A DNA stretch of 63,994 nt, filler included, from Olpidium bornovanus S191 (lineage: Eukaryota; Fungi; Olpidiomycota), in NCBI GenBank assembly GCA_017911155.1. It is 33 parts of 33 records of this genome, joined end to end, with 100 filler letters (N's around TTAATTAATTAA, not from the genome) between each part and the next. Parts side by side here need not be neighbours in the genome. Positions count along the whole stretch, not along the records: positions 8,223 to 10,300 come from JAEFCI010001410.1; 32 more parts are not named here. One strand, given 5' to 3'. Made by a program: the position numbers and the translations under genes. Positions 8,059-10,487 of the stretch are shown in pieces (positions within the stretch are counted from its first letter, which is position 1; every line of letters starts with the position of its first letter). A model generated the notes under the pieces. That model saw only the letters and a list, made by a program, of their open reading frames with translations, was not told the origin of the DNA and made no database searches.

Positions 8059-9433
8059 ATAGGTACTGTATCCACCCTGGTCTGGGTGGTACGGGAAAAG
8101 TTTTAAAGGGACCGGTAGAAACNNNNNNNNNNNNNNNNNNNNNNNNNNNNNNNNNNNNNNNNNNNNTTAATTAATTAANNNNNNNNNNNNNNNNNNNNNN
8201 NNNNNNNNNNNNNNNNNNNNNNGAGAGAAACTGATGAGAGAGAGAGAGGCTGAGGAGATAGAAAGAGAGAGTGAGAGTTCAGGATTATTACCGTTTTGCG
8301 AACCGCGCTCGCCTCCGAATTTCAAGCCATCATTGTTACTGGAAAACAGTGTGCCCAAACATGAACAACGCCGGCGCGGTACGCAAACCGCGCAAACGCG
8401 CCACAACATATCCCCCGCTCGCCTTCCCTTTCCTTCCTGTCCTTCCTCCGTTGGGCCATGGCCGCTTCAGCATATATTTCCCGGATAACACAGTTTCTGA
8501 CTTGCGGGGCTTGGATCAATCGAAATCAACCGAAAATTGAAGCTATTGATTAAATTTTTTGGAGGCGAAAGGCGGGAAGAAACGCCCACGACATACAAGG
8601 ACGCCGAGGGCAGTTCAGCGATCGTCTAACTCCCCTACCTCTTTCCCAAAAAAAAAAAAAAAAAAAAAAAAATTAAAAAAAGTACTTTTTTGGAAAACAG
8701 TTTGATCAGCGTCGATCGGCCGGGGTTTCGTTGCCAGGGAGATCATCTCGGGATACCGGCTGGTTCGGATGTGCCAAATCAGTTTCAGCAGCGCGAGGGA
8801 AGAGAACCACTTGCCCTCCGTTTCCCATTCCCTCCGCCGCCACCAAAAAAATATGCACCGGGAGATGAACGATCTTTGCATTGACCTGAAGTGCAAGGCC
8901 AACCTAAAACGTAACCCCCGGACGGGGACGGCCTGTCCAAGGCTTCCATCCGCTCCGAGGGGAGGGTCTCGTCCCGAGTCTACCTCGAAACCGCCGAAAC
9001 CCGCCAAAGTCCCGCCGGCTTTCCCTCTCGCGGCGCAGCGCTCGAGGCCGAACGGAGCGGAAGGAGACGCCGCCGGACGTCCGGGGTCGTCCAGCGCCGG
9101 TGCGGCAAGCTGCCGCTTTTCGGAAACCCGGTGCCGTGACCGAGATCCGCCGAAAAGGAGGAAGAAGGTCCAGCCGCATTTTTTTTTCTTCTTCTTTTTT
9201 TTTTTCTTTATTTACTTTCCTTTTTTTTTTGCGAGCTTCTCAACACCGCTTGGGGGAGACTTCCATTTTGACTGAATTCAGTTCGGTCGCGGTTCGGGCA
9301 GAACGGAAAAACAAAGCTGCCAAGTTGGAAGCTGCCGAACACTCGGCGCCAAGGTGGTGAGGGCCGGTGCGAAGCCCTCGGACCGTAGGTCTCCGGCGAC
9401 ACTGACCGGGCCGCACCGAACCCGCCCCTGCAG

Positions 9434-9657
9434 TTTTGTCACACTGGGCTACCGAGCCGGCGCGGCCGCCGCGGTATCAAAAGAGGCCGCCGACCGGCAG
9501 CGCCGAAGCGAACCGGTTGCAAGAAAGCGTGACCTGGGAACAGCGGAGGGCGGAAATCTACGCTCTGAACGCCGTGTTCCGCGCCATAGAGGAGAAGCGG
9601 TTCCGGGCCTACGACGCCATGCGACGGTCCGAGGTGCGCACGGCGCCCGCGGAATAG
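9434..9657 (+). CDS. SVBP: Terminal exon of an SVBP (small vasohibin-binding protein/CCDC23)-like protein
   Basis: Acceptor CTGCAG ends at 9433. The exon encodes [29 protein letters not shown], which aligns to human SVBP [30 protein letters not shown] (recalled from memory) with 8/8 identity over RAEIYALN. Confidence 0.7.
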
Positions 9658-10487
9658 AAATTTTCCGTCCCACGGAGCGTTTGGGGGGTCAACCCGGAAG
9701 ATTTCGCCGCTACCGCGTCTTCCGGGAGGGCTACCTCACCGGGCAAAAGGGAACCGGGACTCGGGAAGAGGGAAGTCTCCCGCTGTACTTTTTATCGCGC
9801 CTTCGTTGGGCCGCTTCGCCGGGGGGCGCTAGGTACGGTTTCTGGGGCACAAAGGCGGAACGTCCGTGTTACACTGAACTAGGCGGCGGGGAAAATCCCT
9901 TTCTGGGTTCAGACGCCGTTTTATTCTTTAACCCGGGGGGGAGGGGAGGCCGCCGCGGCCCAAAACGGAGGACTACTTTGTACCGGATCTTTCAGACCGG
10001 TTCGGGCCTTCGCGGTCCGGCTGCGGTGCGCATTTTAAACCGCGGGGAGCGGGCGTAAAGTAACACACGCGAGCACGCACAACGGTTTTTTTTCTCCTGG
10101 TTCACGCATGCGAAGGGGATGCGGCAATTTGTCGACATCCCGCTTGCTTGCTTTCTGCGCTGGTTCGCCCGGCCGCGCGCGGGCACCCGTTGCGGAGAAA
10201 GGCCCCCCCCCCCCCCCCCCCCCCCCCCACCCCCGCCCGCCCCTCCCTTCCCCCCCCCCTCCCCCTCCCCGCCCCCCCCCCCCCCCCGCACCCCCCGCGC
10301 NNNNNNNNNNNNNNNNNNNNNNNNNNNNNNNNNNNNNNNNNNNNTTAATTAATTAANNNNNNNNNNNNNNNNNNNNNNNNNNNNNNNNNNNNNNNNNNNN
10401 CGAAAACGAAAAAAGCCCAGCAGCGTGATTTTGTTGAGAACCTATGCAAATGACATGGACGATCGCCGCCGCGCCCAAACGCACACA

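Follow-up and report, generated by a model that had tools for sequence, protein, structure and literature searches.

The window analysed here is a stretch of 63,994 nucleotides, filler included, from the genome assembly of Olpidium bornovanus S191 (GCA_017911155.1). Within it, a 2,078-base piece (8223-10300) carries a reading frame which appears to be the last exon of an SVBP/CCDC23-family gene. The features at this locus are as follows.

9434-9657, plus strand: putative terminal coding exon of an SVBP/CCDC23-family gene, open from 9436 to the TAG at 9655-9657, supported by the match to PF15674, GC3, and phase periodicity
9538-9603, plus strand: conserved core of 22 residues, the predicted vasohibin-binding face, which aligns with residues 33-54 of human SVBP
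9493-9642, plus strand: predicted single long alpha-helix, residues 20-69, from AlphaFold2 with the 18-sequence alignment A3 (mean pLDDT 85.9)
9357-9433, plus strand: candidate 77-nt intron from a pattern scan, with donor GTGAGG (9357), branch site CTGAC (9402-9406), and acceptor CAG (9431-9433)
9272-9356, plus strand: candidate upstream exon segment in frame mod3=2, which joins the terminal exon in phase and is open after a stop codon at 9269-9271
8703-8942, plus strand: block in which GC varies with codon phase in frame mod3=0, with a GC spread of 0.27-0.37
9179-9235, plus strand: T-rich tract of about 55 nt, identified from the sequence and a repeat scan and lying just 5' of the candidate gene, which may be either a dA:dT tract of promoter type or the pyrimidine tract of an intron

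The CAG acceptor places the start of the exon at 9434, and translation from 9436 gives 73 codons that are open as far as the TAG. In the exon frame GC3 is 0.82, whereas the two alternative frames have 0.64 and 0.56, and a sliding-window analysis shows strong GC-phase periodicity across 9453-9662 that is lost right after the stop codon. A 234-aa ORF (9354-10058), which overlaps the exon but is read in a different frame, was rejected as an artefact of the GC-rich sequence, having neither a codon-phase signal nor a Pfam match. The initial annotation had described a spliceable terminal exon at this position, and the peptide at 9538-9603, the acceptor, and the stop codon are all in place, but three-frame translation and a list of the ATG codons showed that neither the exon nor the in-phase segment at 9272-9356 has an in-frame ATG, which means that the gene model is partial.

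The 77-nt intron is plausible, judging by the pattern of its splice signals. Read directly upstream, the exon frame meets a stop codon at 9403-9405, with no in-frame ATG between this and the core. The sole upstream ATG codons, at 8769, 8853, and 8865, are in frame mod3=0 and more than 500 nt from the exon, within the periodic block at 8703-8942. This block gave no Pfam or ESM Atlas match, and it might supply a 5' exon to the SVBP-like gene or be a small gene in its own right. Speculatively, a donor-like GTAACC at 8911, whose phase would suit an acceptor at 9281, might connect the block to the sequence downstream. The missing start may lie in further 5' exons, may have been lost to an assembly indel in a homopolymer, or may reflect a gene that has decayed. 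Another upstream frame, mod3=1 (…ERKNKAAKLEAAEHSAPR, 9304-9354), has an SVBP-like look, but no GT…YAG pair joins it to 9434 in phase and its GC3 is 0.58 against 0.71 in frame mod3=2, and it was not adopted.

An A run of about 30 (8648-8681) and the T-rich tract at 9179-9235 flank a 500-bp GC-rich block at 8682-9178. An Rfam match in the T-rich tract to the plastid psbA 3'UTR was rejected, at 23.7 bits where 55.8 are needed. Eight other ORFs of the piece have no Pfam match at E<=1; among the ORFs present, that of 168 aa at 8769-9275 has neither a Pfam nor an ESM Atlas match, and one of 130 aa on the minus strand has no Pfam match. A pattern scan found no polyadenylation consensus downstream of the exon. 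The piece starts with a GA-rich repeat (8223-8280) and its last 100 nt or so are C-rich, with C runs of up to 26 (10203-10300), and it looks like a short contig that was broken where the sequence is of low complexity. Indel errors in the homopolymers could alter the reading frames.

For the direct exon searches, the query was the terminal exon by itself. The sole Pfam family matched at E<=10 is PF15674 (CCDC23/SVBP), with E=2e-5, and since 24,736 models were compared this corresponds to a per-model probability of about 1e-9. This profile had been proposed in the initial annotation as a check on its reading; it returned the expected family and no other, but the score of 24.9 bits is under the gathering cut-off of 27. 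The non-animal members of the family mostly score 15-24 bits against PF15674, with only one of them, P0016 (28.7 bits), passing the cut-off, and the exon scores higher than most. The alignment runs from residue 31 to residue 59 of the 73 in the exon and from position 25 to position 54 of the 63 in the profile, and the distance from the core to the C-terminus is the same in the exon and in human SVBP.

Other searches lead to the same family. All 10 of the matches to PDB sequences in a phmmer search with the single exon are SVBP, the best at E=0.02, and the top three clusters in the ESM Atlas are CCDC23, at 0.92, 0.90, and 0.88. A profile made from four sequences, the exon and three marine cores, finds human and mouse SVBP in the PDB at 3.4e-7, with the next match, which is not SVBP, at 0.91, while with alignment A3, which contains the exon and 17 relatives, 13 out of 13 PDB matches are SVBP and the best has E=1.8e-12. 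Each of the 18 members of A3 also matches PF15674 individually at E<=0.01. The similarity between the exon and SVBP is confined to about 30 residues of one helix. Despite the missed Pfam cut-off, it is well supported that the exon encodes a relative of SVBP/CCDC23, and the suggestion in the initial annotation of an SVBP-like exon is borne out by the E=2e-5 match to PF15674, by profiles that lead to SVBP only, and by the retention of the VASH1-contact residues that are described below.

The core motif alone is not diagnostic of the family, because nine of its residues are shared by unrelated proteins. Four bacterial proteins of 86 aa (P0019, P0021, P0022, and P0024) carry QRRAEIYAL, identical over nine residues to the SVBP core, and these belong to PF07704 (Rv0623-like, antitoxin-like) with 65 bits and have no CCDC23 match. 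The case for SVBP rests instead upon the longer pattern, with N43, V45, a hydrophobic residue at 49, and F54, upon the distance to the stop codon, and upon the profile results.

In the crystal structure of human VASH1-SVBP, SVBP is one extended helix that is wrapped by alpha1-alpha5 of VASH1 (PMC6937246). The SVBP residues in contact with VASH1 are Q35, R36, E38, I39, Y40, A41, L42, N43, V45, and L49, and activity is lost in the Q35A/R36A and V45A/L49A mutants (PMC6937246). At these ten positions the exon has R, R, E, I, Y, A, L, N, V, and I, of which eight are identical to the human residues. The change of L49 to I is conservative and that of Q35 to R brings in the residue that is the family consensus at this position outside the animals. 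Across the 18 members, R38, A39, E40, I41, Y42, and N45 (exon numbering) are invariant and R37, A43, and L44 are nearly so. The invariant R38, E40, I41, Y42, and N45 are the human contact residues R36, E38, I39, Y40, and N43, and because the family-invariant columns coincide in this way with contact residues, the simplest explanation would be that an interface with vasohibin has been conserved.

In the AlphaFold2 model made with A3, the pLDDT is 97-99 over the core, while the N-terminal proline-rich stretch is disordered. A Foldseek search of the helix model against the PDB gave no match, as is expected for a lone helix, and is uninformative. By analogy with human VASH1-SVBP, the helix would lie in the alpha1-alpha5 groove of a vasohibin-type transglutaminase-like cysteine protease, where its invariant R-AEIYALN-V face would stabilise and activate the enzyme, and the activated vasohibin would remove the terminal tyrosine of alpha-tubulin. 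Taken together, the best explanation for the locus is that it is probably the terminal exon of an SVBP/CCDC23-family gene, encoding a helix that would act on an enzyme of the vasohibin type.

A scan of metagenome contigs identified a 266-aa intronless ORF with an SVBP-like core on MDSY01104851.1 (L001), and relatives of this ORF (P0001-P0003) are present in Tara Oceans and other marine assemblies. Among the sequences found, the closest core to that of the exon is that of the long-form marine proteins, with 13 identical residues in P0001 and a best identity of 57% over 30 residues. A search with the four-sequence profile gave further relatives (P0004-P0018, P0020, and P0023), and the marine proteins come in short (70-88 aa), mid-size (117-166 aa), and long (225-270 aa) forms, the non-animal relatives overall having 54-270 aa. 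Two are from Albugo, an oomycete and thus a stramenopile: P0038 is A0A024G5T9 of Albugo candida, for which the name in UniRef is "Small vasohibin-binding protein", and P0015 is F0WCY0 of Albugo laibachii.

In the long forms P0001-P0003 (L001:1742-2542 (+), L002:2357-3169 (+)) there is a conserved N-terminal block, …DRKSRFVEVD-EAMRKLAEERAQ…, and the C-terminal sequence RRRRMGDPP. On two contigs the intronless long-form gene is head-to-head with a homologue of LIS1 (LisH_PAC1 + WD40). P0012, a 170-aa protein from an ENA metagenome, has ankyrin repeats (PF12796, PF00023) followed by an SVBP core at its C-terminus, and the vasohibin-binding helix may here have been fused to another domain. When all of the relatives were compared with the piece by tblastn, the N-terminal domains of the long forms were absent and only 9499-9621 was matched.

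No near relative of the exon was found by phmmer at E<=0.001 among 1.84 billion representative proteins, a library for which animal SVBPs, at about 18 bits, are under the threshold. A word search with the exon likewise gave no match, this search being incomplete, as vertebrate SVBPs were also missed. With neither a phmmer nor a word match, the gene would appear to be unannotated in the collections searched, from which it does not follow that it is unique.

The relatives also bear upon the origin of the contig. The initial annotation allowed that the contig might be contamination from an animal, but the core belongs to the non-animal type: it agrees with P0001 over 13 residues and with human SVBP at only 11 of the 24 aligned positions, and an animal origin of the piece is unlikely. 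Were the SVBP real but the 2-kb contig a contaminant from another microbial eukaryote, it would be silent on fungi. The piece is short and isolated, with its GA repeat at the start and its C-rich end of about 100 nt, and the closest relatives are protist proteins from marine metagenomes and Albugo, with no fungal relative in any of the searches. Set against this, the best relative has only 57% identity over 30 residues, so that no known source organism is indicated, the short intron with its CTGAC branch site suits fungi as well as it does many protists, and the lack of a fungal match means little when the word search is incomplete. Such a contaminant is rather unlikely.

The missing start codon raises a different explanation, in which the exon is a decayed or unexpressed relic, derived from an SVBP gene that has lost any usable start and goes untranslated. 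No ATG lies in frame from 9403-9405 to the core or within 9272-9356, the nearest ATG codons are far upstream and in another frame, and the pattern scan for a downstream polyadenylation consensus was negative. However, the 73 codons are intact, the strong GC3 bias stops exactly at the stop codon, and every one of the family-invariant contact residues has been kept, while another exon on the 5' side, or an indel introduced by the assembly close to the long homopolymer runs, would explain the missing start equally well. That the exon is a relic is distinctly improbable.

Finally, a chance resemblance, in which an unrelated R/E-rich helix or a spurious GC-rich ORF happens to contain RAEIYALN, would suit a match that is short and below the Pfam cut-off, in a candidate picked from a very large scan, given that the PF07704 proteins show that identities of nine residues arise independently, but it is very improbable indeed, considering the per-model probability, a match that reaches V45, L49 (as I), and F54, a core that is correctly placed relative to the stop codon, a coding-phase signal that coincides with the ORF and is lacking, like any family match, from the overlapping 234-aa ORF, and profiles that link the exon to SVBP only while the bacterial control has no CCDC23 match.

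With the exon read as part of an SVBP/CCDC23-family gene, it is, on its sequence, an additional member of an old and widespread family. The presence of the same core in Albugo and in marine-metagenome eukaryotes shows that the SVBP family is older than the opisthokonts, regardless of the nature of this locus. In the initial annotation, the origin of SVBP would be pushed back to at least the opisthokont ancestor; this understates the age, given the Albugo and marine members. The accompanying statement that SVBP is mainly described in animals is true of the papers, in which it is described together with the mammalian vasohibins (PMC11761321, PMC13406575), but the databases hold relatives from oomycetes and marine samples.

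Vasohibin was reported in 2016 to be widespread in eukaryotes "with the exception of fungi" (PMC4866520). The literature searches found no paper linking vasohibin to chytrids, none on SVBP in oomycetes, where the matches were to Pseudomonas strain SVBP6, and none stating a pre-opisthokont distribution of SVBP. A two-component detyrosinase in a fungus is plausible as a reading of this locus. More broadly, and tentatively, since it falls a little short of being probable, the two-part detyrosinase may not have arisen in animals but may go back to the ancestor shared by opisthokonts and stramenopiles, and may have been kept mainly by flagellated lineages, with the trypanosomatid vasohibin secondarily simplified and the long or fused forms of SVBP being lineage-specific. 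The flagellated keepers would then be the organism of the window, which is said to be a zoosporic fungus, the oomycetes, and marine picoeukaryotes.

A conserved SVBP helix in a non-animal genome, with relatives in Albugo and in marine samples, means that the cofactor is ancient, and the timing of the dependence of vasohibin upon its cofactor, or of its independence, becomes testable. If the contig is fungal and there is a vasohibin in the same genome, zoosporic fungi would be a simple, transformable system in which to study the tyrosination cycle of cilia and centrioles. If the contig is not fungal, or there is no vasohibin in that genome, the exon would be part of one more unannotated small gene.

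Animal SVBP is a small complete protein of about 55-90 aa with a start codon. Human and mouse SVBP (6J4O, 6NVQ, 6OCF) resemble the product of the exon in having a single long helix towards the C-terminus, with an identical RAEIYALN-V core, F54 retained, and a core equally far from the stop codon. They differ from it in that only 11 of the 24 core-aligned residues of human SVBP are identical, with Q35 replaced by R, R44 by A, and M46 by F in the exon, and in that the exon has a proline-rich stretch where human SVBP has a lysine-rich N-terminal part.

The Albugo proteins A0A024G5T9 and F0WCY0 are, like the exon, non-animal sequences that share the core and have sub-threshold matches to CCDC23 (19.3 and 23.0 bits), but they are about 150 aa in length, have unrelated N-terminal parts, and continue with TILRQLQQEKI after the core. 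The marine proteins P0001-P0003 (225-270 aa) and P0009 (166 aa), from Tara Oceans contigs, have the closest core that was found, while they differ from the exon in having intronless genes, long conserved N-terminal regions, and a charged helix before the core.

TbVASH and LmVASH of the trypanosomatids represent the same pathway, the detyrosination of tubulin in a flagellated microbe. No SVBP homologue is found in these genomes and their vasohibin works alone (PMC11761321), whereas the organism carrying the exon would keep at least the SVBP half. Because the trypanosomatid vasohibins are independent of SVBP, finding one of the partners is no assurance that the enzyme has two parts. In Chlamydomonas, the VashL locus (Cre05.g241751) has been described loosely, both as the counterpart of "the SVBP peptide" in the human complex and as a "Vash2-SVBP homologue" (PMC11770126).
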